The notes under the pieces were generated by a model. That model saw only the letters and a list, made by a program, of their open reading frames with translations. It did no database searches and was not told the DNA's origin. The position numbers and the translations under genes are program-made. From IMG/VR virus record IMGVR_UViG_3300023174_000046, positions 153,414-217,413 of that record: a stretch of DNA of 64,000 nucleotides; one strand, given 5' to 3'. Below are positions 1,115 through 62,225 of this stretch, one piece after another (positions within the stretch are counted from its first letter, which is position 1; each line of letters opens with the position of its first letter).

Positions 1115-1115
1115 C

Positions 1116-12919: not shown

Positions 12920-14533
12920 ATGATCCTCGAGGCTATAGATGGCAGTATATTAATTGCGCTTGATGATGCAATCTTACTAGATGTAGGAAGTACACCGCCC
13001 GCTCCAGACACAAATTATACAGAACTCCCACAAGGTGAACCTCTTACACTTTCACTTCAAAGTTACAACTTGTTAAGAACCAACGGTGTGTATTTGTGTG
13101 GAGCTGATTATTCATCAGTAACTGATTATTTGAGTACAGGGTTTTTCGATGGTTACGTAAATGTTGAAGATTTTAAAAACACAAAAAGTTTATCTGGGTA
13201 TTTTCCTTCGTTCTCTGCATATAAAATTTCAACAAATGCATACAGAGTAGCAAATAATAATATTATTGATGTAAAGTTACCGCCAGTAGCAATTTCATAC
13301 GATACAGATGCATCGTTTAATATTATTGTAAAAAATACAGGTGGGTATAGTAAGAGCAGGTTATATTACCCAGCTAGCATCGAACCTTCACCAACGCCCA
13401 CACTAACTGTCACACCAACTGTCACACCAACTGTCACACCTACAGTAACGCCATCTGCAACACTCCCACCCCCTTTACCAAAGAAATTGCTTAGCACAGG
13501 AAACAATTTATATGGTCAATTGGGATTGGGCAACAGTGGTGCTAGTACAAGCAGAAACACTCTCACTCCATTGACTGGCAATTGGTTACAGGTCACATGT
13601 GGGTATTGGCACACCATGGCGCTGTCTGCTGGTGCTACAAAATGGTTTAGCGCAGGAAGCAATTTCAGTGGTCAATTAGGATTAGGATTGGAATTTGGTA
13701 ACACCAGAAGCACATTCACTCCATTGACTGGCAATTGGAGTCAGATGGCATGTGGTCACAGCTACACCATGGCACTGTCTGCTGGTACTACTCGGTTGTT
13801 TGGCACAGGACTCAATTCCTTTGGTGGTTTTGGATTGGGTGATACAGTTCGGAGAAACACCTTCACTGCACTGACTGGCAACTGGTCCCAGATGGCATGT
13901 GGTGTGGGTCACACCATAGCATTAAGTGCAGATACAGACAGGTGGTTTATCACAGGAGACAATTTCAGCGGTCAATTAGGCTTAGGTGACAGTGGCAGCG
14001 CTACTGATAGACTCACTTTTATAGCATTGACTGGCAATTGGTCACAAGTCAGATGTGGTGGGTATCACACCATGGCACTGTCTGCTGGTACTACTCGGTT
14101 GTTTGGCACAGGAAACAATAGCAGCGGTCAATTGGGATTGAGCGACACAACTAATAGAAACACTTTCACTGCATTGACTGGCAATTGGTCACAAGTCATA
14201 TGTGGAAGCGAACTTACCATAGCATTAAGTGCAGATACAGACAGGTGGTTTATCACCGGGCGGAATGACAATGGTCAATTGGGATTGGGTGATACAGTTC
14301 AGAGAAACACCTTCACTGCATTGACTGGCAATTGGTCACAGTTTGCATGTGGTAGGTTTCACACCATGGCACTGTCTGCTGGTACCGATGCATGGTTTGG
14401 CACAGGAAACAATAGCAGCGGTCAATTGGGATTGGGTGATACAGTTCAGAGAAACACCTTCACTGCATTGACTGGCAATTGGTTACAATTCATATGTGGA
14501 AGCGAACACACCATGGCATTGAGCGCTACATAA
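12920..14533 (+). CDS. RCC1-repeat beta-propeller protein, probably virion-associated
   Basis: Seven GxNxxGQLGLG...W.Q..CG..HT.ALSA repeats after a PT-rich linker. Confidence 0.85.
   Translation: MILEAIDGSILIALDDAILLDVGSTPPAPDTNYTELPQGEPLTLSLQSYNLLRTNGVYLCGADYSSVTDYLSTGFFDGYVNVEDFKNTKSLSGYFPSFSAYKISTNAYRVANNNIIDVKLPPVAISYDTDASFNIIVKNTGGYSKSRLYYPASIEPSPTPTLTVTPTVTPTVTPTVTPSATLPPPLPKKLLSTGNNLYGQLGLGNSGASTSRNTLTPLTGNWLQVTCGYWHTMALSAGATKWFSAGSNFSGQLGLGLEFGNTRSTFTPLTGNWSQMACGHSYTMALSAGTTRLFGTGLNSFGGFGLGDTVRRNTFTALTGNWSQMACGVGHTIALSADTDRWFITGDNFSGQLGLGDSGSATDRLTFIALTGNWSQVRCGGYHTMALSAGTTRLFGTGNNSSGQLGLSDTTNRNTFTALTGNWSQVICGSELTIALSADTDRWFITGRNDNGQLGLGDTVQRNTFTALTGNWSQFACGRFHTMALSAGTDAWFGTGNNSSGQLGLGDTVQRNTFTALTGNWLQFICGSEHTMALSAT
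13490..14530 (+). repeat. Seven ~150-nt tandem RCC1-coding repeats
   Basis: Recurrent TGACTGGCAA(T/C)TGG and CACCATGGCACTGTCTGCTGGT blocks. Confidence 0.85.
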
Positions 14534-17600: not shown

Positions 17601-19304
17601 GGTACCACTTTTGTGAGTGATGGGCGTGCTGCAGTAACTCATGCCATGACATTCCGAGCAGGTATCAATAACTTTACCGGGGGATCAGATCATAATCACG
17701 TGCAATGGCAAGGCGCCCCTTCCAATCCTACCCAAGCATGGCAAATGACCAATGGTGGATCAACAAGTGTTTATGGTTATGGTGCCAATACATATTCACA
17801 AAGATTTCTTGTACATACACTGCCACAATATCAAATCAGTACCACCATTGCAGCTGTTAGCGGTTTCCTTGACACTCAATCAGCTACCCTTGGTGCAGAT
17901 TCAGATACACTGTCAGGAGTTAAACTTATTCTTGATACTACTGCTGGAGTAGGCAATTATGGGTTAATTAATGTGGGAGAGGTGGTTGGGTTTGTAGTTA
18001 ATCCGGGATTGGTAGGCTTGGTTGCTGCAGCTTACGAAACACAATGCACATTAATTTCATCCAATAACACTGGTACATTATCGACATTTCAATTTAATTT
18101 CTTTATTGGTAACGGTGACAACTGGAGCTCTGCAAACAGAGGTATTCAACCAGTTAATTTAAAATCTAGAGCTGAAGGAGGCAATCCAGGCGTAAATCAA
18201 GTTACAAGTCAAATTGGTACCCCCAGCACACAGTACATAGGTCTCACCGGCAGTTACAGAGGCATGAACAAGCATTGCTTAGCCCGCTTCACTACAGGTG
18301 ATATTTTAACTGGCTTCAAGCCAGGCTCTCCTCTCACATTGTGGGTACCTAAGAGCATGCCATCATCTTCTCCAATTGGCTCTGGTTTCATCACATCTGA
18401 TAAAATTTCAACCTTTGCACAAGGCACATTCCCCACTGGTGTGCGCACAGGTTATTTTGATGCTTATGTAGTGAATGTGAGTGGTGGAGACATGGAATTT
18501 GCTTTGTGTAACTTGATGGATTCATATGGATTTGAAAACAGGTCTTGGCCCATATCTGCTGCTGGAAATGCGGGGTGGTTGTTGTACGGTGGCACACAAG
18601 ACACAGTGCATAGACCCACATTTGGTACTGCTGGTTTTTATTTTGAAAGAGAACCTTGGTACTTTTCTGGCCCGGATTATAACTACCTAAGCGGTGGCAT
18701 GGTCAAGTGTGTTGGCTTAGGTAACTCAGAGGTGTATGGTGATTACTCTTATGGCTTGGGTTACCGTGGTGCTGTGTTAGGTAAGAAGTCCGGTACATTT
18801 GCAGGTGATTACAATGCAGTATTTGGTGATAATTCAGTAGCCATCGGTGGCAGTAATTTAATCTCTACAAGTGGCAATCAGGTAGTCATTGGCACGTATA
18901 ACAACCCCAACACCAATTCATTGTTTGTAGTTGGCAGCGGCGCATCAGATAAAAATAGAAAGAATGTATTTGAAGTAAAAGGAAATGGAGACACTACACA
19001 GTCTGGATTTAATATTAGAAGTTTCTCTCTTATTGCTGCTGCTGGTAGCAATCAAGCAACTGCTACAGAAATAACAACAGAAATTGTTACTGTTACCGGA
19101 GGTACCGGTGGTGTTAGATTGCCTGTTACAAATGGAGGTCATTACATAACATTAAATAATAGAAACATAGCTTTCTCACTTTACCCTCCCGTAGGTGGTA
19201 TAATCATAGATCAGAGTATTGGTGTTAATCAACCATATGTTAGCCAGTGGTTCGGTAGCTTGATTATGTATTCGATTAGCGCTAATACCTGGGCACTTTA
19301 CTAA
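14607..19304 (+). CDS. Long tail fibre/adhesin with YadA-head-like repeats
   Basis: SHAQG/SHAEG repeats, GKVGIGT motif, LFVVGSG...RKNVFEV; late TAAATA at 14595. Confidence 0.8.
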   Translation: MPTYKKFTDFSLVTAPADADFIVGYKADASAEQRTTVNDLLSTSLASKGVFLQGDLSVAIGGDGNTVNSQCMAIGDANVAQGLNSLAQGYSNVTALLYSTAMGYNNKATGDVAFAQGDSNQATGEASFAQGTLNIAEGTDSQAQGFRNIASGPYSHAQGYNNCTGGYVTGNISYGAAHAQGGYNVVAIPLAHAQGFANKIGYYEYADWYATNPPRLGFGYSDRTLSGLNVYGLNNPALSSSVRLFFIGDNGINTYSACVSCTQANYYDPFSQTTGFTIFLKNDASAVLPADDYYSPSIICVPITAYDGSTSFSNFGVAAYAQGLQNVVAGNYAYAQGISNTAQGYASHAAGYASSTGPNAVYAFAHGYNCIAYGRYSHAIGIKAYAQHDNSYVWNSDPNPTGNYFTSSLSAQYSVNAPGGIVLSGGNTSVQGLVVKNGNNIVAELTDGTKNWIYGGLSASTLFGYGNSAGFFYRGIGLATGNVAVSINGVANYANSGITDINGAYNFVYSDLGRVSGISNVLGMESGSVEGALNTVGSPFTISRIVSASNTIFVHSTFINNNTNSFYFRPNQVIQIDGIVGNTYNNSAASRVNTRFTVVSSDTTARSITVVESVTAMQDYRDNQPFTDQRYVVAVQGRNTSNTLNVAGAHAEGMGNTVFSRAGHVEGEANVVTGSDGHAENFGNFAATGAHAEGNENRAGFGVLYFDSYNASTKTFQLFTNFLSAHNTIDLPLTPNSTLYFINVAAGASNKRKFTRFLVLSSDPALNTVTALSAVYPDDIPSSGVSTLTRAKQLLQSLNSYTHAEGSFNNAKGPSSHAEGAFTIAQGSYSHAAGVNATAKQDYTYAWSSNDGAGPQSNRKNTETTRTGQYMVSAHGGIFFPGKVGIGTDSIENALTVAGTISATTITADSISYNGAGFNTLPTYKTYQVNLAAKNSAWPVISAAQLAETGYYDSGAAYAMPGGLVIKGHSPAYNTSIQNLPGYGTYGMWLQGVDQMDPGTTFVSDGRAAVTHAMTFRAGINNFTGGSDHNHVQWQGAPSNPTQAWQMTNGGSTSVYGYGANTYSQRFLVHTLPQYQISTTIAAVSGFLDTQSATLGADSDTLSGVKLILDTTAGVGNYGLINVGEVVGFVVNPGLVGLVAAAYETQCTLISSNNTGTLSTFQFNFFIGNGDNWSSANRGIQPVNLKSRAEGGNPGVNQVTSQIGTPSTQYIGLTGSYRGMNKHCLARFTTGDILTGFKPGSPLTLWVPKSMPSSSPIGSGFITSDKISTFAQGTFPTGVRTGYFDAYVVNVSGGDMEFALCNLMDSYGFENRSWPISAAGNAGWLLYGGTQDTVHRPTFGTAGFYFEREPWYFSGPDYNYLSGGMVKCVGLGNSEVYGDYSYGLGYRGAVLGKKSGTFAGDYNAVFGDNSVAIGGSNLISTSGNQVVIGTYNNPNTNSLFVVGSGASDKNRKNVFEVKGNGDTTQSGFNIRSFSLIAAAGSNQATATEITTEIVTVTGGTGGVRLPVTNGGHYITLNNRNIAFSLYPPVGGIIIDQSIGVNQPYVSQWFGSLIMYSISANTWALY

Positions 19305-22430: not shown

Positions 22431-22522
22431 GCGCGGGTGGTGAAACGGCGAAACACATCTGGCTTAAGATCAGATACGGATTAATGATCACACTGTGGGT
22501 TCAAATCCCACCCCGCGTACCA
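22431..22522 (+). tRNA. tRNA-Leu(UAA)
   Basis: GCGCGGG/CCCGCGT acceptor, TCTGG-CTTAAGA-TCAGA anticodon arm, long variable arm, TTCAAAT T-loop, ACCA. Confidence 0.93.
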
Positions 22523-37173: not shown

Positions 37174-37268
37174 GCCTCCGTCGTCTAGCGGTCAAGACAC
37201 ACGGCTTATACCCGTGCTCGGCACCAGATTAGTGCATAACGTTGGTTCGAATCCAACCGGAGGTACCA
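37174..37268 (+). tRNA. tRNA-Ile(UAU) with a 24-nt variable region
   Basis: GCCTCCG/CGGAGGT acceptor, CACGG-CTTATAC-CCGTG, GTTGG-TTCGAAT-CCAAC, ACCA. Confidence 0.85.
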
Positions 37269-37273
37269 TTTTT

Positions 37274-37349
37274 GGGCGTATAGCTCAGCGGTTAGAGCAG
37301 GGCACTCATAATGCCTTGGTCCTAGGTTCAAATCCTAGTACGCCCACCA
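37274..37349 (+). tRNA. tRNA-Ile2(CAU), lysidine type (Met less likely)
   Basis: GGGCA-CTCATAA-TGCCT-TGGTC resembles ileX-type tRNAs; CCA encoded. Confidence 0.82.
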
Positions 37350-37351
37350 TT

Positions 37352-37425
37352 GCATCTGTAGCTCAGTTGGACAGAGCAACGGATTTCTAATCCGTGGGTC
37401 ACAGGTTCGATCCCTGTCAGATGCA
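37352..37425 (+). tRNA. tRNA-Arg(UCU), CCA not encoded
   Basis: GCATCTG/CAGATGC acceptor, ACGGA-TTTCTAA-TCCGT. Confidence 0.92.
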
Positions 37426-37427
37426 AG

Positions 37428-37649
37428 TTATTTAAATTTTTCTAGTACTAACTGCTTGAGATTGTATGCTGTGGAGTCGGCAATAACATCATATTCATTG
37501 GAATGCTTTTCAATAAATTCCAACAATTTTATAGCATCTTCTTTTGAAAAGCAAACACCTTCCAAATTAGCACCAATCTGATCATTTATTGATTTAGTTA
37601 AACGCTTGCTTTTGCGGTAAGATTCAAAGATCAGATCGTTATCTTGCAT
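37428..37649 (-). CDS. Putative internal head protein (LIFE leader)
   Basis: MQDNDLIFESY; late TAAATA. Confidence 0.6.
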   Translation of the reverse strand: MQDNDLIFESYRKSKRLTKSINDQIGANLEGVCFSKEDAIKLLEFIEKHSNEYDVIADSTAYNLKQLVLEKFK

Positions 37650-38527: not shown

Positions 38528-39415
38528 ATGGCGTTTGATAAAGACTTTAAACTGCTTCAAGAAGAATACAGCAACATGTATTCAAATGCTGAAAACGCAG
38601 AAGGTTTAGCTTCTACTGTTGGCATTCTTCCATGGAAAGAAGTGCCTGAAGAAGAAAAGAACAAAGCATATGAGCTAATAAAGGCTCATAATGATGCTGT
38701 GGTTAACCCCAAAGATGGTCCAGAAAATTATTACTTCATTGATGTAACTGGCAAGCATCAAGTTTATTATACATTTTGGAGATTCAGAATATTGCCAGCT
38801 GCAATACGCAATTGGATCAAGAATCCCATTTACTTTGGCAATTTATCCACAGACATTGTTGCATCTGTTCAAAAGGCTTTGTCAAAGAATATTGTAAAGA
38901 ATGTGCGGGTAGAATTGTATGGTGATGAAACTAGAGAACACTTGATAGGCAGAAGCAAGTCTACCCCTAAATTTACTTTTGGCAAATACAGAGGCAAATC
39001 GTTCCCTGATGTGTATCTAGAAGATCCAGGTTACTTTGCTTTCTTAGCCAAGAACGCTGATCCCAAGTATGCATCTACAGATAATGCTCAAGCCATTCAA
39101 GCTTTTGCGCAAATGTATTTTGATGATGTCACTAAAAAGAACCAGGAAACTTCTACTGCACAATTTGTGGGCAAACCAGGTGATCGCTTTGAAGGTGAAT
39201 TAGAACTTTATAATTTAAAAGAGGTTCCTGGTACCAGAGAGCAAGATGGTTATAATGTGTACAAATTGAAAGATGCTCAAGGCAATAAATATATTACATA
39301 TGCGTTTCCTGCTTCAGAAGTAGGTACTAAGATGAAAGTTAGAGCCAAGATTCAAGCACATAAAGAAATTTTAGGTGTCAAATTTAACAAGATTGGATAT
39401 GTAAAACCTGTATGA
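38528..39415 (+). CDS. Late protein with FGKYRG (DUF3820-like) motif and C-terminal OB-like domain
   Basis: FTFGKYRGKSF.DV...DPGYF; TAAATA at 38516. Confidence 0.65.
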   Translation: MAFDKDFKLLQEEYSNMYSNAENAEGLASTVGILPWKEVPEEEKNKAYELIKAHNDAVVNPKDGPENYYFIDVTGKHQVYYTFWRFRILPAAIRNWIKNPIYFGNLSTDIVASVQKALSKNIVKNVRVELYGDETREHLIGRSKSTPKFTFGKYRGKSFPDVYLEDPGYFAFLAKNADPKYASTDNAQAIQAFAQMYFDDVTKKNQETSTAQFVGKPGDRFEGELELYNLKEVPGTREQDGYNVYKLKDAQGNKYITYAFPASEVGTKMKVRAKIQAHKEILGVKFNKIGYVKPV

Positions 39416-39999
39416 AAAAGTTCAAAGAATTTTTTACAGAAGATTTTGATGATAATTCTGATGATTTAGATAGCAAATTAATAACAATGCATAAGCAGAT
39501 GCAAAAAAGAAGACAAATGTCCGGCAAGTCTTTACAGTCTGTAGATGCTGCTCCCTTAATGGCACCAGGATACTTTAAAGATTTTAATTTAAGTACAATT
39601 GCTAAGGGGCTGAGAAGATATTATAGAAGTATTATAGTTGATTATTATTCTAAAATTTTTAAAACTTTTAAAGATAAAATTGAACCTATATCCCAACAAG
39701 GAAAATGGGAGATGGACCCAGTTAAACAAGCTGAAAGCTTTAGAAGCTTAAGGTCTGCAGGCGGTCCAAAGTTTACCTTGTGTGGTTTTAATTTTGATAA
39801 AAGATATGGCTTTACTGATGAAGATAGACAAATGAATAATATCCTGGTCAATAGAATGTATGAAAAGATACATGACACCTTGCCCAAACTACTGGGCAAC
39901 AAAGCAAAAGCTATTGATATAAAGATTGACAACGACCCTTGGTATACAGGGCTTACATGTATAACAATAAATATATATTTGAACTATGAAAACGTTTAA
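39412..39999 (+). CDS. Putative internal head protein with T4-type capsid-targeting sequence
   Basis: MKKFKEFFTE resembles T4 CTS MKTYQEFIAE. Confidence 0.65.
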   Translation: MKKFKEFFTEDFDDNSDDLDSKLITMHKQMQKRRQMSGKSLQSVDAAPLMAPGYFKDFNLSTIAKGLRRYYRSIIVDYYSKIFKTFKDKIEPISQQGKWEMDPVKQAESFRSLRSAGGPKFTLCGFNFDKRYGFTDEDRQMNNILVNRMYEKIHDTLPKLLGNKAKAIDIKIDNDPWYTGLTCITINIYLNYENV

Positions 40000-40252
40000 A
40001 GAATTTTATTTAGAAGAAAAAGCTGGTGCAAGATGCACCAAGGTAACAGGTCAGCAATCATCTACACGGAAAGATAAGAAGTATATGCGCTGTGCACGTG
40101 TAAATGGTAAATTAAAAAGAGTGCATTACGGTGATCCTAATTTACGTATTAAGAAATCTAACCCCAAGAAAAGAAAGTCTTTCAGAGCTCGTCACAAGTG
40201 TTCTTCTGCCAAACCAGGAACAGCTAAGTATTTCAGCTGCAAAAATTGGTGA
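39986..40252 (+). CDS. Basic putative internal head protein (CTS leader)
   Basis: MKTFKEFYLEE; VHYGDPN...RKSFRARHKC...YFSC. Confidence 0.7.
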   Translation: MKTFKEFYLEEKAGARCTKVTGQQSSTRKDKKYMRCARVNGKLKRVHYGDPNLRIKKSNPKKRKSFRARHKCSSAKPGTAKYFSCKNW

Positions 40253-40614
40253 AAACGTTTAAAGAGTTTTTTATCGAATCAAAGCAAAAGCATTCTAAAC
40301 AAGAGGCGGGTTACGTGGCGCATACTGTTAAAGGTCAAAGATGTGATCAATGTACTATGTGGAGAGCTCCTAATAAATGCTCTGCAGTAGCAGGAGATAT
40401 CAAACCTGAAGCATGGTGCAAGTGGTGGAAGCAAAGCCACAGAAAAGATTTAAAAGAGAAGAGCATACATGATCCTGTAAGGCCTGGTATATTAAAGCGT
40501 CAGACCAAAGGCAAAATGACCTGCTCCAAAGCAAGAAGATTAAGGGCTAAGCAAAAGAATAAAGGTAACAATACAGCTAAAGCAGCTCAACGCTACTTAA
40601 ATTATCACTGTTAA
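40249..40614 (+). CDS. CTS-leader protein with HiPIP-like 4-Cys domain plus a basic module
   Basis: GTG start (M)KTFKEFFIE; CDQC...KC..V.G.I.PEAWC. Confidence 0.7.
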   Translation: MKTFKEFFIESKQKHSKQEAGYVAHTVKGQRCDQCTMWRAPNKCSAVAGDIKPEAWCKWWKQSHRKDLKEKSIHDPVRPGILKRQTKGKMTCSKARRLRAKQKNKGNNTAKAAQRYLNYHC

Positions 40615-41543
40615 GCCCACTGTGCTGTAAACGGCGTTGTGTAGTTTGTAAATGTGTTTGTAGCTGTCTTGTAAAGCTCAAAGCTATTAACTTGTATATA
40701 AGCCTGGTAACCATCATCCACATTGATGAATGTGCCATTAACCACAAACACATCTGCTGTGAGTGCTGGTGAGAACAGTGTCATACCAGCAGTTAGATTA
40801 GCTCTTGCTTGTGTGCTTGTAGCAGCACGAATAGATTCTGTTGCAAGCTTCATTCTTGTACCAATACCAGAAGTTGTTTGAAGCGAAGTTACATAATTAG
40901 CTGTTAAAGCTTTTCTTGTTGTTGTATCATCCCATAGAATTTTATTCAAGACATATTGCTGATAGTTGTTACCTGTACCGTAACCGGCGCCACCGGTACC
41001 AAAAGGAAATACATCACCACTTAATGGTGCAGTACTAGAAAGAGCATTGCTTGCTGTACCATAAACAGCAGGATTTACTAATCTATTCACAGCAACACCA
41101 ACAGCACCGCAAGTGTTTGAAAGTTCATTGCCTTGACCTCTTCTGAGCATGTAACCCAAATAGCCGCTCAAAGAGCATACACCAATATGAGGAGCAGAAA
41201 ATAACATTAATGCACCATTGGTAGCATATTGTATGTGTGAAGCCCATGCAAAGAGTGCAATTCTCCCAGTATGCGGGTAACCACCAATGCCACCTGCAAA
41301 AAATGGTCCTTGAAAATCATTCAAAGTAGCAGGCATTTGACCAATATTGTTATTGTAATAAGCTGGTGCATTTGCATCATCTGAACAAATTGAATCGGCT
41401 AATAAAACATTGTTGGCGCTATACCCACATAATGTTTGAATAAACGTTTTGCAATATCTGCCAAAATCTTCCACAAGAATGGCTCCAGGGTAGGCAGAAG
41501 CTGCTGTTACTATTGAGGTGTATGTTGATTGTGATATTGGCAT
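40611..41543 (-). CDS. LCIB-family (theta-type) carbonic anhydrase-like protein, copy 2
   Basis: ICSDD, GPFFAGGIGGYPHTG, APHIG, RRGQ, TCGA. Confidence 0.8.
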   Translation of the reverse strand: MPISQSTYTSIVTAASAYPGAILVEDFGRYCKTFIQTLCGYSANNVLLADSICSDDANAPAYYNNNIGQMPATLNDFQGPFFAGGIGGYPHTGRIALFAWASHIQYATNGALMLFSAPHIGVCSLSGYLGYMLRRGQGNELSNTCGAVGVAVNRLVNPAVYGTASNALSSTAPLSGDVFPFGTGGAGYGTGNNYQQYVLNKILWDDTTTRKALTANYVTSLQTTSGIGTRMKLATESIRAATSTQARANLTAGMTLFSPALTADVFVVNGTFINVDDGYQAYIQVNSFELYKTATNTFTNYTTPFTAQWA

Positions 41544-41551
41544 AAAAAATA

Positions 41552-42652
41552 TTAGTTGAGTTGTAATCCTGATTTAAATTGTGTAGTAAAGTCTTCGAAG
41601 GTATCTGTGGTCTTGTTGTATCTTAAGAAGTTTGTTACATCTGCATAAGCTTTAAATCCATCATCCACGTTAATAAATGTACCAGTGCTCAAGAACACAT
41701 CAACATTTCTGCCAGGGAACGCTGTTCTATAAGCAAGCTTGAATGTGCTGTTATTGTCAGGTTTAGCAATAATATTGAAAGCAGAGTTGCGAATTGCTTC
41801 TGTGGCCAATATCATTTGCTGCCCGAAGTCTGATGTTGCACAAATGGCTGTGCGTGCTGTTACATCATCATAAATTGCCTTGACAAGAGTATAGAATTGA
41901 AAATCCGATGCATTTGTTAACAATACATCAAGTGGATCAGGGCTAGGCCATTGAGGAGCAGGGCCGCTTACACCATTGTTTCTGATCCAATCAACAGCAG
42001 CTGCTGCAGCACCACAAGTTGCAGAAAGATTACCATAATTTTGACCGCGGCGTCTCATGTAACCTACTTGACCATCGCGAGTGATGCCAATGTGAGGGGC
42101 TATGTACAAGAATAGAGCACCTCCACTTGTGACGTGTGATGCATAAGCAAGGAGCCCTGTGGTACCAGTGTGTGGGTAACCATCTAAGCCGCCACCCATG
42201 AATGGTCCAAGGAAAGTTTGCAATGATTGAGGCATTTGACCGAGATTATTAATATTATTAAACACTGGTCCGTTCACATCATCAGAGCAAATAGATGATG
42301 AAAAGAGAACATTGCTTGGAGTGTAAGCAGCACTTACCGATTGAATATAAGTTTGTACGCGAAGACCAAAGTTTTCAGCTGTTGCAGCAGTTGGGTATGT
42401 CTTTCTTACCACATCACCATAATCAAGTTGTTGCGAAACTGGACCAGAATCAGATGTTAAACTGGAACCATGCATTAAGTTGTTATTCTCTAGTTCTGCA
42501 CGAGCTGCTTGTACTCTTTCTTCTATGATTTGTTGTTCAAATAAGAATTTCTTTTGAAAATCGGCTGATTGTGGCCTGCTAGGCACAACTACGGGGTTGC
42601 GAGGGCGACCATCATATTGCTTTAACCCATCTACATATTGCCTAGGAATCAT
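41552..42652 (-). CDS. LCIB-family (theta-type) carbonic anhydrase-like protein, copy 1, with N-terminal extension
   Basis: ICSDD, GPFMGGGLDGYPHTG, APHIG, RRGQ, TCGA; start MIPRQ 5 nt after TATAAATA. Confidence 0.82.
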   Translation of the reverse strand: MIPRQYVDGLKQYDGRPRNPVVVPSRPQSADFQKKFLFEQQIIEERVQAARAELENNNLMHGSSLTSDSGPVSQQLDYGDVVRKTYPTAATAENFGLRVQTYIQSVSAAYTPSNVLFSSSICSDDVNGPVFNNINNLGQMPQSLQTFLGPFMGGGLDGYPHTGTTGLLAYASHVTSGGALFLYIAPHIGITRDGQVGYMRRRGQNYGNLSATCGAAAAAVDWIRNNGVSGPAPQWPSPDPLDVLLTNASDFQFYTLVKAIYDDVTARTAICATSDFGQQMILATEAIRNSAFNIIAKPDNNSTFKLAYRTAFPGRNVDVFLSTGTFINVDDGFKAYADVTNFLRYNKTTDTFEDFTTQFKSGLQLN

Positions 42653-42657
42653 GTAAT

Positions 42658-42679
42658 TATTTATATTTAACAATAAATA
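42658..42679. promoter_or_regulatory. Back-to-back T4-type late promoters
   Basis: TATAAATA on minus (42658-42665) and TAAATA on plus (42674-42679), each 5-6 nt from an ATG. Confidence 0.75.
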
Positions 42680-42685
42680 ATATCA

Positions 42686-43435
42686 ATGAATAATAAAGAA
42701 AATCGTCTTATATTTGAAGCTTTTGCAACAAAGCTAATTAAAGAGGATATGCCTTATCCTACATTTGCCAAGCTTGCCAAGCATGCTTCGCCTAAATCGT
42801 CCAAGGAAAAAGATGAAAATGAATACAAAGATCAAATGCCTGATAGCAAAGAAGAATATTCAGCTCATGATTATGCCAAAGAAATGGAAGCCAAGCCCGG
42901 TGAACAAGAAGAACAACCACAAACACATGCGGACATGTCTCATGATCAAAAAGAAGCTGCAATGCTTCTCAAGAAGTTTGGTTACACTTTCTTTGACATG
43001 GACATGCACGGTCGTGATTACGTTGCTTATTTTGTGAACGAAAAGCTCCCTCACAATCATGCAAAGCATGGCATCAAAGTGAAGCATGATGGCATCATAG
43101 TTGGTCCTGCAGATTCCCCTTTCATTGGCAAGAAAGTAAAAGAATTAATTCCTTCAGAAGATGCAGAAGAGCAAGCAGAAGCAGTAGCAGTTTCTGGCCA
43201 ATACAAATACATCTATTTTCTAGATGCTGAAGAATGTTATTCCATTAACCCTTATCAAATTGTGCCGTTCAAGAAAGCAGTAAGAGAGACAAGCAATTGG
43301 ACCAAAGCGCGTGTAATGGTTGGTGAAGATATTGTTCAAATTCTTGGCAAGAGTGTTAAAGATCAAAGAGCTTGGTACATTGTAGGTGCAGAAGCTCCCA
43401 ACGATCATGTATTTGAAGTTTTGTTAGGTAGCTAA
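42686..43435 (+). CDS. Putative internal head protein (LIFE leader)
   Basis: MNNKENRLIFEAF; acidic EDAEEQAE linker. Confidence 0.65.
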   Translation: MNNKENRLIFEAFATKLIKEDMPYPTFAKLAKHASPKSSKEKDENEYKDQMPDSKEEYSAHDYAKEMEAKPGEQEEQPQTHADMSHDQKEAAMLLKKFGYTFFDMDMHGRDYVAYFVNEKLPHNHAKHGIKVKHDGIIVGPADSPFIGKKVKELIPSEDAEEQAEAVAVSGQYKYIYFLDAEECYSINPYQIVPFKKAVRETSNWTKARVMVGEDIVQILGKSVKDQRAWYIVGAEAPNDHVFEVLLGS

Positions 43436-43436
43436 T

Positions 43437-43985
43437 ATGGATAGAGAATCAAAGCTTATTTTCGAAGCATATGCATTGAAAGGTTTAGCTGCAGGTAAAA
43501 CACTTGCTGATATAGCCAAGAAGCATGGTGTTAGTATAGAAGTGATGCAAACAGCTCTGCAGAGAGGCATGAAAGTTGAACACGAGCACACAGGTAATGA
43601 AGCTGCTGCAAAAAAGATTGCAATGGATCATTTGTTTGAAGATCCAGAATATTATGCAAAACTTGCCAAGATAGAGGGTGAAGAGAGTGAGCAAAATGAA
43701 GAGCGCAGATTGGATCCTAAATGCTGGAAAGGCTATCATAAATCTGGTACCAAGCTCAAAGATGGTGTGCGTGTCAACAATTGTGTTAAATCACAAAATA
43801 ATGAAGAAAAGCTTGTAGGTGGTCAGAAGAAACTGGATGCCAATCATGATGGTAAGATCTCTGGCGCAGATTTTAAAATTCTCAAGAAGCATAAAGGTGA
43901 AGAACAAGAAGAAATGCAATGCCCATATGCAGCAAAAGGCTGTAAATGTAGTGAATGTGAAGAATGTGCTGCCAATCAGGCTTAA
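43437..43985 (+). CDS. Modular putative internal protein (LIFE leader; DUF5661-like, CWKGY, EF-hand-like and Cys modules)
   Basis: EHEHT...IAMDHL.EDP.YY.KL; CWKGY...NCV; LDANHDGKISGADF. Confidence 0.7.
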   Translation: MDRESKLIFEAYALKGLAAGKTLADIAKKHGVSIEVMQTALQRGMKVEHEHTGNEAAAKKIAMDHLFEDPEYYAKLAKIEGEESEQNEERRLDPKCWKGYHKSGTKLKDGVRVNNCVKSQNNEEKLVGGQKKLDANHDGKISGADFKILKKHKGEEQEEMQCPYAAKGCKCSECEECAANQA

Positions 43986-56634: not shown

Positions 56635-57705
56635 TCACAAGGACCATTTTTCAGTCAAATAAGAATTAACTGCAATCAATTCTGCATCAGTCAGAATTCT
56701 TTCATAAGCAAAAAATTCTCCAATGACACCATTGAAGTAGGCAATTTCAGAAACAAATCTGCGTCCAATGGCAACTTTGGCAGCATTGGTAGTAGATGAA
56801 TTGCCTTTGGTTTGAAAATCAGGATCTGATCCTGCAGCAGCACCATTGAACAATATGTCCACTTCGCCTGCTGCATAGTTAATTTTGGCTGTTATGATGC
56901 CAGGAGCAGTGTTATTCTTGAATGTGGCAGTGCTGATATCAGCAGGTGCTCCTTTGTCGTTCAAATCAGAATCAAGTCTCCTGCCTCCAGCTGCAAAATA
57001 CCATCCTTCATCATCAGCAGGGGCACCTGGTATCACAGATGGATTGCTCATGAATTTGATTCTGGAACCATTGCCTCCTCCTGGGCTAGGTCTGGTGGTG
57101 GTGAAAATAGCTTCAGGAAGTACAATGCCTGTGTTAGGATTGCCAAACTGTGCCACACAAACCAATGTGATGCCCGCCACATTGTTGGCAAAAGTGAGGG
57201 AGTTCGCATTACCGTTCAAATGATTGCCACTGTTGGAATCAAATTTTAGGTAATTCATGCCTTGGTAGGATGACAGAGCTGGACGAATGAGGCTGTTGGA
57301 TTGTTCAAAGTGTCTGTTGTTTGTGCTCAAGTCCAGCCATGTGGCCACTGGTGTGTTGAGAGCACAAGGGTTGCCAGATGCATCCAACACACTGACTCTG
57401 CGACTTGAATCAAGCCATATGCCTGGATTTGCAGCAGGGGGCACAAGTGGGTTGCTTCCAGCGCTGCCTGGATCTGCTCCAATGCCCATGGCCGCATCTC
57501 TGGATGCACCATGGTGTTCCAATTGTTTGCGAGCTTCTTGTATGATGCGCATTTGTTGCTGTTGATCAAAAGCCATGCTATCATTAATCATTCGCTTCTG
57601 TTGTTGATTGGGAAGCGCCGGACGCCAAGTGTTGGTATCTGGAGGATAAACTACATTTCTCCCCGGATCAGTGAGCGCATTTAAATAGTCATCAAACCAG
57701 TCCAT
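56635..57705 (-). CDS. Late protein: MDWFDDYL leader module + LamG/ConA-like domain
   Basis: WLDSS...VATWLDLS...F.G.IGE...Y.R.LT..E...V..YL..KW. Confidence 0.75.
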   Translation of the reverse strand: MDWFDDYLNALTDPGRNVVYPPDTNTWRPALPNQQQKRMINDSMAFDQQQQMRIIQEARKQLEHHGASRDAAMGIGADPGSAGSNPLVPPAANPGIWLDSSRRVSVLDASGNPCALNTPVATWLDLSTNNRHFEQSNSLIRPALSSYQGMNYLKFDSNSGNHLNGNANSLTFANNVAGITLVCVAQFGNPNTGIVLPEAIFTTTRPSPGGGNGSRIKFMSNPSVIPGAPADDEGWYFAAGGRRLDSDLNDKGAPADISTATFKNNTAPGIITAKINYAAGEVDILFNGAAAGSDPDFQTKGNSSTTNAAKVAIGRRFVSEIAYFNGVIGEFFAYERILTDAELIAVNSYLTEKWSL

Positions 57706-57713
57706 AACAGTAT

Positions 57714-60086
57714 TTATCCTGGTAAATTCTTAACAACAGTTATATTAGTACCACCTGCTATGCTTTGACCTGCACCAGCAGTCCAGGTGGCATCGCTGGC
57801 TCGAGCATATATTGTACGGCCATTGAGAGTACTTAATGAACCTGCTTCATACACAGTCAATGGAGCAAAGGAACTGATGGTGAGCAAGCTTGTGCAGTTG
57901 TATAAAAACAATCCTCCAATAGATGCAATGCCATTGGGTATGAGTATATTGGTTAAAGACGGGTTTTGTGCAAATGCATAACTGCAAAGGATTGCAGTGC
58001 TAGTGTTTGCTATGTTCACAGCAGTTAATGAGTTTAAATTGAATGCAAATCGACCAACTATGGACACGCTGCCGGGTATGCTCACAGACTTTAACGCATT
58101 GCTTGCAAATGCACCATCACCAATGTATGTTACATTGCTGGGTATATTCACTGCAGACAAATTGTTGCCTTGAAATGCATTGGTACCTATGCTTGTCATA
58201 TTGTTAGGTATAGTTACAGCAGACAATTGATTGTATAAGAATGCACCTATACCTATGCTTGTCATATTGTTAGGTATGTCTACAGCAGACAATTTGTTTT
58301 GTGCAAATGCATAGTCAGGTACAAAATTTATACCAGTCCCCAGTGTAAGGATGGATATATTGTTGCTTTGAAATGCACCTCCACCCATGCTGGTGACAGT
58401 GTCAGGTATGCTCACAGCAGACAATTTGTTGCCGTAGAATGCAAATAAATTAATATTTGTCACGCTGTTGGGTATGGTCACAGCAGACAAATTGTTTAGG
58501 CTAAATGCATAATTTCCTATGGTTGCAACGCTACTGCCCAATGTCAAGAAGGATATGGTGTTGCTTTGAAATGCATAATTGCCAATGGCTGTCACACTGT
58601 TGGGTATGTTCACAGCAGATAATTTCTGGTTATTGAATGTACTTGAGCCAATATATTGCACACTGTTGCCCAGTGTCAAGGAGGATATGTTGTTGCTTTG
58701 AAATGCAGTAGAATCAATATATGTAACTGAGTCTGGTATGTTAACTACAGTTAATTTGTTGTTACCAAATGCATACTCTCCTATGTATGTGACACCATTG
58801 GGTATGGTTGCAGCAGACAAATTGTTGTTGGCAAATGATTGATATGCAATGTTGGTCACACCATTGGGTATGACAATGTCATTCAATCGATTGTCCTTGA
58901 ATGCCTGGTATGATGTGAAGGACAGACCAGTTGGCAGTGTTACAGCAGACAATGCATTGGCAGCAAAAGACAAAGATGCACCAGCTGCACCTTGCTTGGG
59001 CAAACTAACTGCACTCAACTTGTTGTTGGTGCAATACAAGTTTGATATATTCCTACTGCTAGCCACATCCAGGTATGTTAATGCATTGTAATTGCAATTC
59101 ATTTCTTTTAATGCAGAAAGGCTTGACACATCCAGAGATGACAGACTGTTGTAATTCACATAAAGATATTGTATGTTGTTGCATCCTGAAAAATATATGG
59201 AAGAAAGAAGCAATCCTCCTGTTCCAGAGCTGTAATAGCCTTCATAATTATTAACAAAAACACTGATTAGCTTAGGAAGATTGGTGAAAGTAAAAGATGT
59301 GAATTGATTATTTTGCATATAAATAACTTCTAAATCCGTGCATCCAAAAAGATTCACAGATGATAGCCGATTGGATGCAATATTAACAGAGTTTATTTTG
59401 TTGTTGTTGGAAAGATTCAGTGTGGTAAGTTTACCGCCGGGCGCCTGTAAAGATGTTAAGTTCGGAACATTAGTCAGATTGATGGCGGTTAAATTATTGT
59501 TGATACAGTAGAGAGAATGAAGACTGCTGAGACCAGATGCTTGAACAGAAGATAGAACATATTGAAAACCGGCATCATGTTGATAGCTACAATCCAGTAA
59601 CTCTAGTGCAGGCATCTGAGCAGACAGATTGTTCAAAGATGTAAACCAATTAGAATTGCAGTTCAACTGCTTCAGCTTGTGCAAGCCAATGACAGGCAAA
59701 CTTGTAAGTTTATTGCTATTGCAATCTAGTATTTCAACATTTTGCAAATCAAACCCCGTGGTAGGGTCAATTGAATCCCACCCACCCAGCATAGTGGCTA
59801 TTTGCAAATGCTTTACCACTGGTGACAGTATCAGGTCTTCCTGTTCTATGTTATTGTATGACACGTTTAGTTTTGTTGCCAAGGGAAACTGTGTGGCATC
59901 AAAATAATCAAACAAATTGCTGCTCACATCCAGAGTCACAATATTATTTTTACCTGTGATTGCTTGCATCCAGCTGTTCAGCTGACATTCAGCCATGGTC
60001 AAATCCAACTGAGAACAACGGGATGCATCCACACCCTGCATGGGTATTCCTGCAACGTATAACCGGTTAATTTTACCTGTTTTCAT
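57714..60086 (-). CDS. Leucine-rich repeat protein (internalin-type LRR + BspA/LRR_5)
   Basis: L.C..N.L..L repeats then IP.SVT.IG..AF..N.L repeats; in frame with the upstream ORF across one TGA. Confidence 0.88.
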   Translation of the reverse strand: MKTGKINRLYVAGIPMQGVDASRCSQLDLTMAECQLNSWMQAITGKNNIVTLDVSSNLFDYFDATQFPLATKLNVSYNNIEQEDLILSPVVKHLQIATMLGGWDSIDPTTGFDLQNVEILDCNSNKLTSLPVIGLHKLKQLNCNSNWFTSLNNLSAQMPALELLDCSYQHDAGFQYVLSSVQASGLSSLHSLYCINNNLTAINLTNVPNLTSLQAPGGKLTTLNLSNNNKINSVNIASNRLSSVNLFGCTDLEVIYMQNNQFTSFTFTNLPKLISVFVNNYEGYYSSGTGGLLLSSIYFSGCNNIQYLYVNYNSLSSLDVSSLSALKEMNCNYNALTYLDVASSRNISNLYCTNNKLSAVSLPKQGAAGASLSFAANALSAVTLPTGLSFTSYQAFKDNRLNDIVIPNGVTNIAYQSFANNNLSAATIPNGVTYIGEYAFGNNKLTVVNIPDSVTYIDSTAFQSNNISSLTLGNSVQYIGSSTFNNQKLSAVNIPNSVTAIGNYAFQSNTISFLTLGSSVATIGNYAFSLNNLSAVTIPNSVTNINLFAFYGNKLSAVSIPDTVTSMGGGAFQSNNISILTLGTGINFVPDYAFAQNKLSAVDIPNNMTSIGIGAFLYNQLSAVTIPNNMTSIGTNAFQGNNLSAVNIPSNVTYIGDGAFASNALKSVSIPGSVSIVGRFAFNLNSLTAVNIANTSTAILCSYAFAQNPSLTNILIPNGIASIGGLFLYNCTSLLTISSFAPLTVYEAGSLSTLNGRTIYARASDATWTAGAGQSIAGGTNITVVKNLPG

Positions 60087-60089
60087 GTG

Positions 60090-60596
60090 TCAAATGCCTC
60101 CATTCACATCACAGGATGTCACTTGCACCAAGCGCGGTGCAGCATATGGATCATCTGGTGCAATGTAGTGTTCAAAATATAACTCATCACCAGGGACACC
60201 TGAGCCAATGACTTCAGATGTGCCATCCCAATATTGCACAAATGCATACCCCGTGGATGTGTATACATATGCATATACATATTGACCTGGATCAACATTG
60301 TAATACAAAGACACAGTCTCTGCCACAATAGGTGCGGCAGGACTGCCTGGATCTGCTCCAATGCCTTCTGCCACATCTGCATGCGACATGTGACCATGTG
60401 TGTGTTCCTCCAGCTCATGTCTGGCCTCTTGAATCATCTTCATTTGTTGCTGTTGATCAAAAGCCATGCTATCATTGATCATTCTTTTCTGTTGTTGATT
60501 GGGACGAGCAGGGCGCCAAGTATATGTGTCTGGGGGGTAGTTAACTGTTCTGCCGGGATCGGTGAGCGCATTTAAATAATCATCAAACCAGTCCAT
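60090..60596 (-). CDS. MDWFDDYL leader module + N-terminal part of the LRR protein
   Basis: N-terminus duplicates 56635..57705; late TAAATA. Confidence 0.7.
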   Translation of the reverse strand: MDWFDDYLNALTDPGRTVNYPPDTYTWRPARPNQQQKRMINDSMAFDQQQQMKMIQEARHELEEHTHGHMSHADVAEGIGADPGSPAAPIVAETVSLYYNVDPGQYVYAYVYTSTGYAFVQYWDGTSEVIGSGVPGDELYFEHYIAPDDPYAAPRLVQVTSCDVNGGI

Positions 60597-60834: not shown

Positions 60835-61347
60835 ATGGTTAATGATAGTCACTTGATATTTGAAAATTATGTGGATGGCATCTCCAAAAGAAAAGGTGAG
60901 CTGGCCGGAAACATCATGGACATTGTGAGATACGGTATTCCTTCCAAAGAAGAGTTTATTAAGATCAGACAAGAACTGCATGACAAAACAAAAGAAATTT
61001 TAGACAGAGGTACTCCTGCAACAGAAGAAGAGAAACACCGAGGCAGGCAGTTGATAGGCATGATAAGATCCTACAGAGCTCAACATCCCAATGATCCTCC
61101 TGTGGCTAAAAACCTGCATCATGCAGAAGAGAGTGCAGAAAATACACAGCCTGCAGATGTATCCAATGAAATCAGAATCAAATTGGGACAAGCCTATAAT
61201 ATAGTCAAAGGTTTAATTGAGCTGCTGGACAAGACACCCTCAGAACAAACACCATACAATGAGATGGCCATAACCCATCTGGCCAATCTGGAGGAAGATT
61301 TAAAAGAATTATCCATGATGCTTCAAGACAGAATGCTGGGTAAATAA
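60835..61347 (+). CDS. Putative internal head protein (LIFE leader)
   Basis: MVNDSHLIFENY; EESAEN linker; TAAATA 60821. Confidence 0.65.
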   Translation: MVNDSHLIFENYVDGISKRKGELAGNIMDIVRYGIPSKEEFIKIRQELHDKTKEILDRGTPATEEEKHRGRQLIGMIRSYRAQHPNDPPVAKNLHHAEESAENTQPADVSNEIRIKLGQAYNIVKGLIELLDKTPSEQTPYNEMAITHLANLEEDLKELSMMLQDRMLGK

Positions 61348-61352
61348 TTGAT

Positions 61353-62225
61353 ATGAGAAAAGATGATCATTTGATATTTGAATCTTTTATTAATAAGAAA
61401 GGTGATGCTGGCGTTGGTCGGCCGGCTTCAGAAGAAGAAATTAACGTTAGTAAAGCTGATCTGAACAAGGATAAACAATTGAGTGATTATGAATTGGCCC
61501 GGGCTAAAGCCATGGACAAAGCCATGCACAAAGATGAACAAGCAGAGAGCAAGTCTACAGGCCGAGGTGCAGTGAATGACATAGTGGTTTCAGAGTTGCA
61601 TAAGATACATACAGCATTGAATCAGATGTCTAGCATGATTGATTTAAATCCTAGTGCAGAGGTGGATCAATTGTTATCTAAGATAAGGGATGTGGCTGAT
61701 ATGCTAATTGCAGAAAGGCCTGCAGAGAATGAAGAGAGTGCGGATGAAAGAAAAGAGCGGGTACAAAGAGGATGGGATATAAACAAGAAGAGATGGGCTA
61801 AATGGAAGATGGAGAATCCAGAGGCTGCTGCTAAACATGCTGCAAAGAAAGCTACTGGTAAAGAAGAGAGTGCAGAGAATGAACCACATGGTTATCCTCA
61901 GGGAATGACAGCTATTCAGAACTTGTTGTTAAATGAATTGAAGAAGTATGGCTTTGAATTAACAAGAATTAGTCATACAGATAAAGAGAGAGACAAGTAC
62001 CCAACGGTATTCATGCATAATAAGAGTGGACCGATGCATAGGGTAGTAGAGATTAGCGGTATGGGTGAGATCAATGGTGAGCCTTATAAGAAGTATCTGG
62101 CTGATTTAAAAGAGAAAATCAAACGTTTATCTGGTATAAGACCTGAAAATCCAGAAGATCCTTATTATGATACATGGCAGAGCATTGCTCAAGATCATGC
62201 TGGTGAAGAAGAAGAAGATTGCTAG
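61353..62225 (+). CDS. Modular putative internal head protein (LIFE leader)
   Basis: MRKDDHLIFESF; EQAE, ENEESADE, EESAENE linkers; ADLNKDKQLSDYE. Confidence 0.65.
   Translation: MRKDDHLIFESFINKKGDAGVGRPASEEEINVSKADLNKDKQLSDYELARAKAMDKAMHKDEQAESKSTGRGAVNDIVVSELHKIHTALNQMSSMIDLNPSAEVDQLLSKIRDVADMLIAERPAENEESADERKERVQRGWDINKKRWAKWKMENPEAAAKHAAKKATGKEESAENEPHGYPQGMTAIQNLLLNELKKYGFELTRISHTDKERDKYPTVFMHNKSGPMHRVVEISGMGEINGEPYKKYLADLKEKIKRLSGIRPENPEDPYYDTWQSIAQDHAGEEEEDC

Follow-up and report, generated by a model that had tools for sequence, protein, structure and literature searches.

A gene pair of the LCIB/theta-type carbonic anhydrase family, with a predicted LCIB-type fold, in an uncultured T4-like lake phage

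Why would a lake phage carry two adjacent genes resembling the LCIB/theta-type carbonic anhydrases, a family described mainly from algal carbon-concentrating mechanisms? We examined this question in IMG/VR record IMGVR_UViG_3300023174_000046, a 217-kb genome of an uncultured freshwater T4-like phage. Coordinates refer to the window, the 64,000-nucleotide stretch of this record (positions 153,414 to 217,413) that was analyzed, unless otherwise noted. The initial annotation, made from sequence alone, described two paralogous LCIB-like genes under a late promoter and proposed that late timing, an N-terminal extension resembling a leader module at 56-60 kb, and L-[ST]-[AG] motifs pointed to a virion-displayed or packaged CO2/bicarbonate enzyme pair rather than a typical metabolic auxiliary gene. 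What it had observed at the locus was confirmed. Its interpretation was only partly supported. The features of the locus are as follows.

42672..42679 (plus strand): a second, divergent late-promoter element, AATAAATA, 6 nt before the ATG of the neighboring plus-strand gene (42686-43435); the two elements lie back to back, 6 nt apart.
42658..42665 (minus strand): T4-type late promoter element TATAAATA, 5 nt upstream of the gene A ATG.
41552..42652 (minus strand): gene A, 366 aa from the ATG that its orthologs also use.
42428..42652 (minus strand): N-terminal extension of A (residues 1-75), with a conserved QY[VIL][DE]GL motif, a Pro-rich stretch, one long helix (residues 30-57) in the AF2 model, and a Gly/Ser-rich linker; it is not part of the LCIB fold.
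41552..42427 (minus strand): LCIB/theta-CA-fold core of A, inferred to be catalytic (residues 76-366), with invariant residues C122, D124, D125, H173, H187, R201, and C213.
41544..41551 (minus strand): 8-nt spacer between the A stop codon and the B ATG, with no promoter motif.
40611..41543 (minus strand): gene B, 310 aa, an LCIB/theta-CA-fold paralog without an N-terminal extension, with invariant residues C53, D55, D56, H103, H119, R134, and C145; its stop codon overlaps that of the convergent gene 40246-40614.

Family membership and predicted fold of the two proteins

A and B are 43% identical over about 300 residues (BLASTP E 2e-59), and the ICSDD, GG..GYPHTG, APHIG, RRGQ, and TCGA motifs listed in the initial annotation are all present in both. 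Both exceed the Pfam gathering score of 25 for PF18599 (LCIB_C_CA), A with 107.7 bits (E 6.8e-31) and B with 72.5 bits (E 4.1e-20), and both were also recovered by a search of the whole genome for the family. A phmmer search of PDB sequences matched PtLCIB4, 6kfs, 9vzj, LCIB, and LCIC, with the ICSDD Cys and Asp, the ASH[VI] His, the APHIG His, and the TCGA Cys aligned to PtLCIB4 residues. The zinc ligands of PtLCIB4 are reportedly Cys46, His102, and Cys126 (Jin et al. 2016), a numbering consistent with the PDB mutant names S47R and H88A. The corresponding residues are C122, H187, and C213 in A and C53, H119, and C145 in B, each with an Asp two residues after the first Cys (D124 and D55). These residues, together with A R201, are invariant among 122 homologs of 35 to 93% identity. 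The second-shell His and Arg noted as important for active-site integrity (CrLCIB His162 and Arg194, PtLCIB4 His88; PMC5876011) are likewise invariant, as H173 and R201 in A and H103 and R134 in B, and H173 aligns with the His of PtLCIB4 "AGHI."

The AF2 model of A (pLDDT 79.6, core mostly above 85) matched LCIB-family crystal structures, including those of PtLCIB4, LCIB, and LCIC, namely 5b5z, 5b5y, 6kfs, 5b60, 5b5x, and 5k5w in Foldseek at E 1e-12 to 9e-6, with TM by target of 0.71 to 0.81 over about 280 columns, and LCIB_C_CA clusters of the AFDB matched at E 1e-14 to 1e-10. Canonical beta-carbonic anhydrases, such as E. coli CynT2/Can, M. tuberculosis Rv3588c, and pea CA, share the general alpha/beta fold and Cys/His/Cys zinc ligation but were only distant hits (E 0.01 to 0.5, TM below 0.5). 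The phage proteins lack the CxDxR and HxxC motifs of that group, having Asp125 in place of the Arg and 25 residues between His187 and Cys213. The proteins are only 15 to 23% identical to Chlamydomonas LCIB/LCIC, Phaeodactylum PtLCIB3/4, and the bacterial LCIB_C_CA proteins (PDB 5k5w, 5b5x, 5b5y, 6kfs, and 9vzj), and the phage clade is 18 to 23% identical to cellular LCIB proteins. It carries lineage-specific N-terminal modules instead of transit peptides, as well as a CSDD motif and other invariant features absent from the part matched by the Pfam profile: GTFINVDDG..AY near the C terminus, D125, and Q139. Both genes are under strong purifying selection. Values of dN/dS were 0.07 to 0.15 across A, B, and the A extension (0.07 to 0.13 for B), and the extension, at 0.07 to 0.14 and 71% mean column identity among 15 orthologs, is as constrained as the core.

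Late promoter element and gene arrangement

The octamer TATAAATA, identical to that of gp55-dependent late genes of T4, was not enriched in the window (5 found, 7 expected). However, the broader NATAAATA motif, which corresponds to the late promoters of cyanomyoviruses, is strongly tied to gene starts across the 217-kb genome. Of 85 copies, 45 lie within 40 nt upstream of a called ATG, and 31 of those lie at 5 to 6 nt, so the promoter call rests on position and not on the count of the octamer. The motif precedes head, tail, and fiber genes but also nrdB and phoH homologs. A gp55 late sigma factor homolog (41% identical, E 2.5e-17) is encoded at 75080-75643 of the genome. Among related IMG/VR loci (designated here by L numbers), AATAAATA-N5-ATG precedes the A orthologs in L099 and L100, and TATAAATA-N4-ATG precedes the solo gene in L014. 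The spacing of 5 to 6 nt, which differs from that of T4 and cyanomyovirus late genes, leaves no room for a Shine-Dalgarno sequence and implies leaderless or near-leaderless late mRNAs.

B is read as the second cistron of the A transcript, and similarly close spacing was seen in all relatives carrying the pair. Contigs 80 to 93% alike to both genes occurred in three lake metatranscriptome libraries, although these carry no start-site or timing information and DNA carry-over is not excluded. Modeling of the A-B complex, one of the checks proposed in advance, gave an ipSAE of 0.92 against 0.00 for the best of 3 controls, a mark reached by 58 of 80 solved complexes and 2 of 110 mismatched pairs. 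The predicted interface covers the CSDD, GG.GYPH, ASH, and RRG segments, with pLDDT of 86 to 90 for B. This prediction cannot separate an A-B heterodimer from A-A or B-B homodimers, because the family has solved homodimers, the two chains are paralogs, and close relatives of a true partner also score high.

Distribution, gene neighborhoods, and N-terminal extensions

The phage contig recurs in lakes. The subfamily occurs on at least 175 IMG/VR contigs but on only one small MAG contig among 185,579 species genomes. Neither DNA nor protein searches of the INPHARED phages returned a match, PHROGs contained no family for A or B, and the BFVD viral structures contained no LCIB-like fold, the best hit being a canonical CA of a pandoravirus at E 0.03. 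We found nothing on LCIB or theta-CA in phages or viruses in the literature we could search. A comparison with Syn9 identified T4 core genes but no psbA, psbD, hli, talC, cobS, or mazG, and the nearest cultured capsid and portal proteins were only about 34% identical. These results, and the occurrence of the family in crAss-like phages, do not favor the idea of a cyanophage whose cytosolic CA collapses the carbon-concentrating mechanism of its host. The only hint to host identity was the rarity of Shine-Dalgarno-like sequences (15% of genes against 9% background).

The family sits in head or structural gene blocks in three phage lineages. In T4-like relatives (capsid protein 74 to 88% identical) the single gene lies directly after portal gp20 (13 loci) or after capsid gp23 (7 loci), and in crAss-like contigs it lies between the major head protein and PHROG "virion structural proteins." Other members lie beside replication genes (the L075 group, next to a DNA polymerase) or after an endolysin (L010), and the regions next to g20 and g23 in T4-like phages also collect nonstructural accessory genes. 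The small basic neighbors in the window were not significantly similar to the DUF6321 protein next to the crAss-type gene.

About 70 of the 80 related IMG/VR loci have a single copy. Of 122 family members, 106 carry an N-terminal extension of 23 to 132 aa, and 12 of the 16 without one belong to the B clade. Solo copies nearly always carry an extension, whereas in pairs only the upstream copy does, a layout repeated in a second set of pairs with its own up and down clades (L040, L042, and L057). The extensions are lineage-specific modules, and in L010 the module is shared with the adjacent non-LCIB protein (E 1e-12) and with the crAss-type extension (E 6e-8), recalling phage proteins with a conserved N-terminal particle-binding or targeting module and a swappable C-terminal payload, such as tailspikes and fibers with their anchors and T4 internal proteins. 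Pfam and PHROG scans of six different modules found nothing significant, and ESM Atlas feature searches gave only subthreshold leads, namely T4_gp9_10_N for the MAIIPVSDL-type module (score 0.75) and nothing usable for the others.

The proposed likeness of the A extension to the MDWFD leader (56635-57705 and 60090-60596) is only marginal. BLASTP gave E values of 0.002 and 6e-4, and hhalign gave a colinear, end-to-end alignment at a probability of 62 to 67% (E 5e-5 to 8e-5). However, an HMM of the A extension did not retrieve the leaders (E about 6) and found no significant second hit among all ORFs of the genome. A leader-profile search of 1.84 billion proteins returned 73 representative clusters, none of them A-type, with no LCIB domain in the 50 that were scanned; the payloads of this leader are adhesin or lectin domains (LamG, BspA-LRR, fn3, GLEYA, PA14, and CBM5/12). 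The suggested L-[ST]-[AG] link was not supported, as A has 1 copy (background level), the two leader proteins have none, and B has 5 at unconserved positions. Neither A (MIPRQYVDGL) nor B (MPISQSTY) begins with the MKTYQEFIAE-like capsid-targeting sequence (CTS) of T4 internal proteins, which ends in an (L/I)-x-E protease site, although the genes flanking the pair start with CTS-like MKTFKEF../..LIFExF sequences and A has conserved [LIV]FE and IIE/IEE motifs at residues 37 to 45. No signal peptide was found, and A had no significant match to any known virion protein family.

Interpretation of the gene pair

Our analysis demonstrates that both products are zinc-site-intact members of the LCIB/theta branch of the beta-carbonic-anhydrase fold, that both are under strong purifying selection, and that they lie behind a T4/cyanomyovirus-type late promoter element so close to the ATG that the mRNA would be nearly leaderless. 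The remainder of the model is inferred. In this view, the phage gp55-type sigma factor drives late transcription and A and B are made together; the two chains pair through the usual beta-CA dimer face, where the active sites lie, to form a heteromer in which only A carries a 75-residue adaptor; the adaptor tethers or targets the complex to the phage particle, so that the enzyme is displayed on or carried in the virion rather than acting only as a free cytoplasmic enzyme; and the chemistry is interconversion of CO2 and bicarbonate, or a closely related small-molecule hydration, at a Cys-His-Cys zinc site. Family membership is close to certain and late coexpression is likely. The heteromer and carbonic-anhydrase-type catalysis are each slightly more likely than not. 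Virion association is not shown. It gains circumstantial support that the initial annotation did not have, from the head or structural gene blocks in three phage lineages and the modular architecture of N-terminal add-on plus payload, but it remains tentative, as does the model as a whole, and late timing alone does not imply a virion protein.

The strongest alternative, which remains possible, is that the pair is a soluble, late-expressed cytoplasmic enzyme, an auxiliary metabolic function that would speed CO2/bicarbonate equilibration in the infected cell, for example to feed bicarbonate-dependent carboxylations for nucleotide and lipid synthesis or to buffer pH, with the extensions serving oligomerization, regulation, or localization within the cell. 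The invariant catalytic residues, the absence of any extension on B, the homologs beside replication or lysis genes, the late motifs before nrdB- and phoH-like genes, and the lack of a signal peptide, a T4 CTS, or a match to virion proteins are consistent with this view. However, extra nucleotide supply would be wanted early or in the middle of infection, and recurrence in head or virion blocks of three separate lineages and N-terminal modules shared in at least one phage with a neighboring nonenzyme protein are not expected of a plain metabolic enzyme. It is also possible, although somewhat less likely, that the two proteins are independent homodimeric enzymes arising from simple duplication. 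The predominance of single copies indicates that homomers must work, but the long-plus-short layout is conserved in two separate sets of pairs, extensionless chains are found essentially only as downstream partners, and both clades have long stem branches, consistent with divergence after pairing.

Less likely still is that the fold serves something other than carbonic anhydrase activity, either different zinc-dependent chemistry (the beta-CA fold also gives COS and CS2 hydrolases) or a noncatalytic, zinc-stabilized structural or binding module of the particle, as was proposed for the inactive LCIB-LCIC complex. Recombinant Chlamydomonas LCIB and LCIC showed no CA activity in vitro despite an intact site (PMC5876011), and the phage clade is divergent, with invariant motifs of its own. 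Against this, both Cys, both His, the Asp, and the Arg are invariant over a very divergent family, a pattern more typical of catalysis than of a scaffold, and diatom members (theta-CA) are reported as zinc carbonic anhydrases (PMC7215798). A broader possibility, which we consider unlikely on present evidence, is that many uncultured freshwater phages of at least two unrelated morphotype lineages (T4-like and crAss-like) carry such a zinc enzyme as part of the particle, attached or packaged through exchangeable N-terminal adaptors, with B riding along as a heteromer partner in pair-bearing phages. This would be the first virion-borne CO2/bicarbonate enzyme and would act at the cell surface or on entry rather than as an ordinary metabolic helper.

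The LCIB/theta carbonic anhydrases are described in the literature we searched as proteins of algal carbon-concentrating mechanisms, with a few bacterial homologs. Here they form a large and diverse subfamily, almost confined to viruses, whose members keep every catalytic residue, are inferred to be expressed from late promoters, and sit among head and virion genes, in the present case in a phage without photosynthesis genes and with no link to a pyrenoid or carbon-concentrating mechanism. What the enzyme would do for the phage is not resolved by these data. If the proteins are active, phages in lakes carry their own inorganic-carbon enzyme, an unrecognized class of phage-encoded function. If they are part of the particle, that would be a new kind of virion enzyme, and the exchangeable N-terminal modules would be a handle for studying how phages load or display cargo. 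The conserved long-plus-short pairs, two diverged paralogs side by side that recall the LCIB-LCIC heteromer, also offer a simple bacterial-scale model for why LCIB-type proteins work as heteromers.

The LCIB-type gene pair and its protein family

The 217,413-bp IMG/VR virus record, of which the DNA examined here is the last 64 kb (153414-217413), is rated complete by CheckV. Two adjacent genes of one protein family, here called A and B, were found together with two short promoter-like motifs, as follows:

42672-42679, plus strand: late-promoter motif serving the divergent neighbor, 6 nt from the motif of gene A
42658-42665, minus strand: late-promoter motif TATAAATA, 5 nt before the ATG of gene A
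41552-42652, minus strand: gene A, 366 aa
40611-41543, minus strand: gene B, 310 aa, starting 8 nt after the stop codon of A

The length of A is that obtained from the ATG that its orthologues also use; a longer TTG start, listed mechanically at 42673, would overlap the promoter. The two proteins are 43% identical over about 300 residues (E 2e-59). The initial annotation had described tandem LCIB/theta-carbonic-anhydrase-like genes behind a late promoter, each retaining the motifs ICSDD, GG..GYPHTG, APHIG, RRGQ, and TCGA. Each of these motifs is present in both proteins, and this observation is confirmed. The stop codons of B and of the convergent plus-strand gene 40246-40614 overlap by 4 nt (40611-40614), leaving no room for a terminator between the two convergent transcription units.

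Both proteins exceed the gathering score of Pfam PF18599 (LCIB_C_CA) by a wide margin, with 107.7 bits for A and 72.5 bits for B against a cut-off of 25. Sequence searches of the PDB found only LCIB-family entries, namely 6kfs, PtLCIB4 (5b5y) and its S47R and H88A mutants, 9vzj, LCIB (5k5w), and LCIC (5b5x). The first Cys and Asp (ICSDD), the ASH[VI] His, the APHIG His, and the TCGA Cys align to the corresponding residues of PtLCIB4. In an alignment of 122 homologues of 35-93% identity, C122, D124, D125, H173, H187, R201, and C213 (numbering of A) are invariant, and the same holds with B as the reference. The canonical beta-CA motifs CxDxR and HxxC are not present, as in the LCIB family generally.

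An AlphaFold2 model of A has a mean pLDDT of 79.6, with the core from residue 78 mostly above 85. This model matches the LCIB-family crystal structures over about 280 columns at E 1e-12 to 9e-6, with TM scores by target of 0.71-0.81, whereas canonical beta-carbonic anhydrases follow only at E 0.01 or worse. AlphaFold-DB fold clusters give the same family at 18-23% identity. Both genes, and also the N-terminal extension of A, are under purifying selection, with dN/dS of 0.07-0.15 against four orthologous loci.

Late-promoter motifs and the phage genome

Counted in the window alone, the octamer found before A is not enriched (5 found, 7 expected), but the genome-wide picture is different. Of 85 NATAAATA copies, 45 lie within 40 nt upstream of a called ATG on the same strand, and 31 lie at exactly 5-6 nt; examples in the window are at 8679, 10659, 14593, 21092, 25817(-), 33726(-), 42665(-), 42672, 57718(-), and 60611(-). 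Genes behind such motifs include those for the gp21 prohead protease, gp18 sheath, gp19 tube, a gp13-like protein, a 1565-aa fibre-like protein, and two proteins sharing an N-terminal “MDWFD” leader, as well as nrdB- and phoH-like genes. The genome encodes a homologue of the late sigma factor gp55 that is 41% identical to Syn9 gp55 (E 2.5e-17). The same motif at the same spacing precedes the A orthologues in two related loci, L099 and L100, and the solo gene in another, L014. B has no motif of its own and is read as the second cistron. In T4, transcription starts about 6 nt after the element, and by analogy the late mRNAs of these 31 genes would be leaderless or nearly so. Shine-Dalgarno-like sequences are rare in this genome, being found in only 15% of genes against a background of 9%. 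Contigs from three lake metatranscriptome libraries, 80-93% alike, cover parts of both A and B, consistent with expression of relatives in nature, although this does not exclude DNA carry-over and gives no timing.

T4 core genes are present in the genome: gp23, gp22, gp21, gp20, gp17, gp18, gp19, gp43, gp41, gp32, uvsX, uvsW, gp46/47, nrdAB, and phoH. Comparison with cyanophage Syn9 revealed no psbA, psbD, hli, talC, cobS, or mazG. The nearest cultured capsid and portal proteins are about 34% identical and belong to cyanomyoviruses, while the DNA recurs in lake and freshwater metagenomes from several studies. Other accessory or structural genes in the window encode a tryptophan-halogenase-like protein also present in cyanomyoviruses (1892-3310), an RCC1-repeat protein (12920-14533), the 1565-aa fibre-like protein behind a late motif (14607-19304), and a 790-aa BspA-type LRR protein lying between the two leader-bearing genes (57714-60086, minus strand). 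There is also a tRNA cluster (Ile-TAT, Met, and Arg-TCT; 37174-37426) and a separate tRNA-Leu-TAA (22431-22522). The tRNA-Ile call is 95 nt long, unusual for a class I tRNA, and may hold an intron or be miscalled.

Nine or ten mostly small genes start with MK(T/K)FKEF(F/Y).E or with M....(L/H)LIFE(A/S/N)(F/Y), and five of them flank the LCIB pair. They lie in the window at 37428-37649 (minus strand), 39412-39999, 39986-40252, 40249-40614, 42686-43435, 43437-43985, 60835-61347, and 61353-62225, and in the genome at 78487-79374 (minus strand). The first type resembles the capsid-targeting sequence of T4 internal proteins, MKTYQEFIAE, and LIFE fits the (L/I)-x-E site of the gp21 protease, which this phage encodes. 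These genes may encode packaged internal proteins.

Distribution, genomic context, and N-terminal modules

The protein database searched contains 240 homologues. A scan with degenerate patterns found 175 IMG/VR contigs but only one 1.5-kb MAG contig among 185,579 species genomes; the patterns were specific to this subfamily, and the scan therefore says nothing about cellular LCIB proteins with other motifs. No cultured phage, PHROG, or BFVD model among those searched has the family, and a literature search found no paper on it. In T4-like relatives, whose capsid protein is 74-88% identical to that of this phage, the single gene lies directly after portal gp20 in 13 loci or after gp23 in 7 loci. 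In a crAss-like group it lies in the structural block, between the major head protein and three PHROG “virion structural proteins,” next to a Dps-like gene. In one crAss-like locus (L012, 5400-10400) the LCIB-like gene is surrounded by several very basic proteins of 49-97 aa, one of which is DUF6321, and a Dps/ferritin-like protein (DUF5856, phrog_858), which could be a set of packaged cargo proteins. Other family members lie beside a DNA polymerase or after an M15 endolysin. An NADPH-dependent FMN reductase-like gene (PF03358; 44323-44958 in the window, 3134-3826 on the minus strand of L099, and 733-1425 on the minus strand of L100) stays within a few kilobases of the A+B pair in relatives, as do a DUF5661 gene and, in some relatives, a glycosyltransferase and a staphylococcal-type nuclease.

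The LCIB core is preceded by different N-terminal modules in different lineages. Of 122 sequences, 106 carry an extension of 23-132 residues (median, 51), and the 16 without one are 12 B-clade proteins plus what look like fragments or miscalled starts. The A+B pair, with a long upstream and a short downstream copy, is conserved across a clade, and a second set of pairs (loci L040, L042, and L057), whose members fall in their own up and down clades, has the same layout. A and B each form a fully supported clade on a long stem branch. In the related locus L010, a module of roughly 40 residues (KKxFVxYxxxGxIVPGSL..PKPGxWxEV) is shared with the adjacent Fib_succ_major protein (E 1e-12), where it occurs twice, and the same module heads the crAss-type proteins (E 6e-8). 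The regions concerned in this unannotated, mobile N-terminal module are 8001-8180 and 8999-10477 of L010 and 8001-8165 of L012.

The extension of A has a QYVDGL motif, a Pro-rich stretch, a helix at residues 30-57, and a Gly/Ser linker. The initial annotation proposed that it resembles the leader module at 56-60 kb and that L-[ST]-[AG] motifs pointed, with late timing, to a virion-displayed or packaged enzyme pair. The likeness to the MDWFD leader of the 356-aa LamG-like and 168-aa proteins (56635-57705 and 60090-60596, both minus strand) is only weak: BLASTP gave E 0.002 and 6e-4, and hhalign gave a probability of 62-67%, colinear from end to end, but a profile of A's extension did not find the leaders, nor did the leader profile find A. 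The L-[ST]-[AG] motif is not shared by A and the leader proteins. The leader itself, of roughly 75 residues (MDWFDDYLNAL...FDQQQQMRIIQEAR..LE.HG...GADPGS), is a real module that heads 73 representative protein clusters of 34-2595 aa, nearly always from residue 1, and is also seen at 202-1710 (minus strand) of locus L097. It has no Pfam or PHROG family. Its payloads are LamG, BspA-type LRR, fn3, GLEYA, PA14, and CBM5/12 domains, which are adhesin or lectin types expected on the outside of a particle, and it looks like a shared particle-anchor module for adhesin-like proteins.

Possible pairing and roles of the proteins

A prediction of the A-B complex scored an ipSAE of 0.92 against 0.00 for the best of 3 controls, a mark reached by 58 of 80 solved complexes and 2 of 110 mismatched pairs, with an interface running over the active-site segments. 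Because the chains are paralogues of a family with solved homodimers, this score shows likeness to the family dimer and does not show a preference for the heterodimer. The stronger argument is comparative, in that extension-less chains occur essentially only as downstream partners of extension-bearing chains.

Our findings establish that the two genes are real, constrained, and encode LCIB-type proteins with intact zinc-site residues in a late-promoter operon of a T4-like phage. That they are co-expressed late and form a heteromer is likely but unproven, and carbonic-anhydrase-type catalysis is likewise inferred from the conserved site. The reading put forward in the initial annotation is partly supported. 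Attachment of the complex to the particle, or its packaging there, through the extension of A remains plausible but tentative, and the main rival is a soluble late cytoplasmic enzyme. A chemistry other than that of carbonic anhydrase, or a structural role, also remains possible, because Chlamydomonas LCIB and LCIC were inactive in vitro despite intact sites (PMC5876011). A cyanobacterial carbon-concentrating mechanism is not favored as the target, because photosynthesis genes are absent in the comparison with Syn9 and the family also occurs in crAss-like phages. The pair belongs to a known enzyme family but to a previously unrecognized, almost virus-restricted form of it, found in an unexpected genomic setting.
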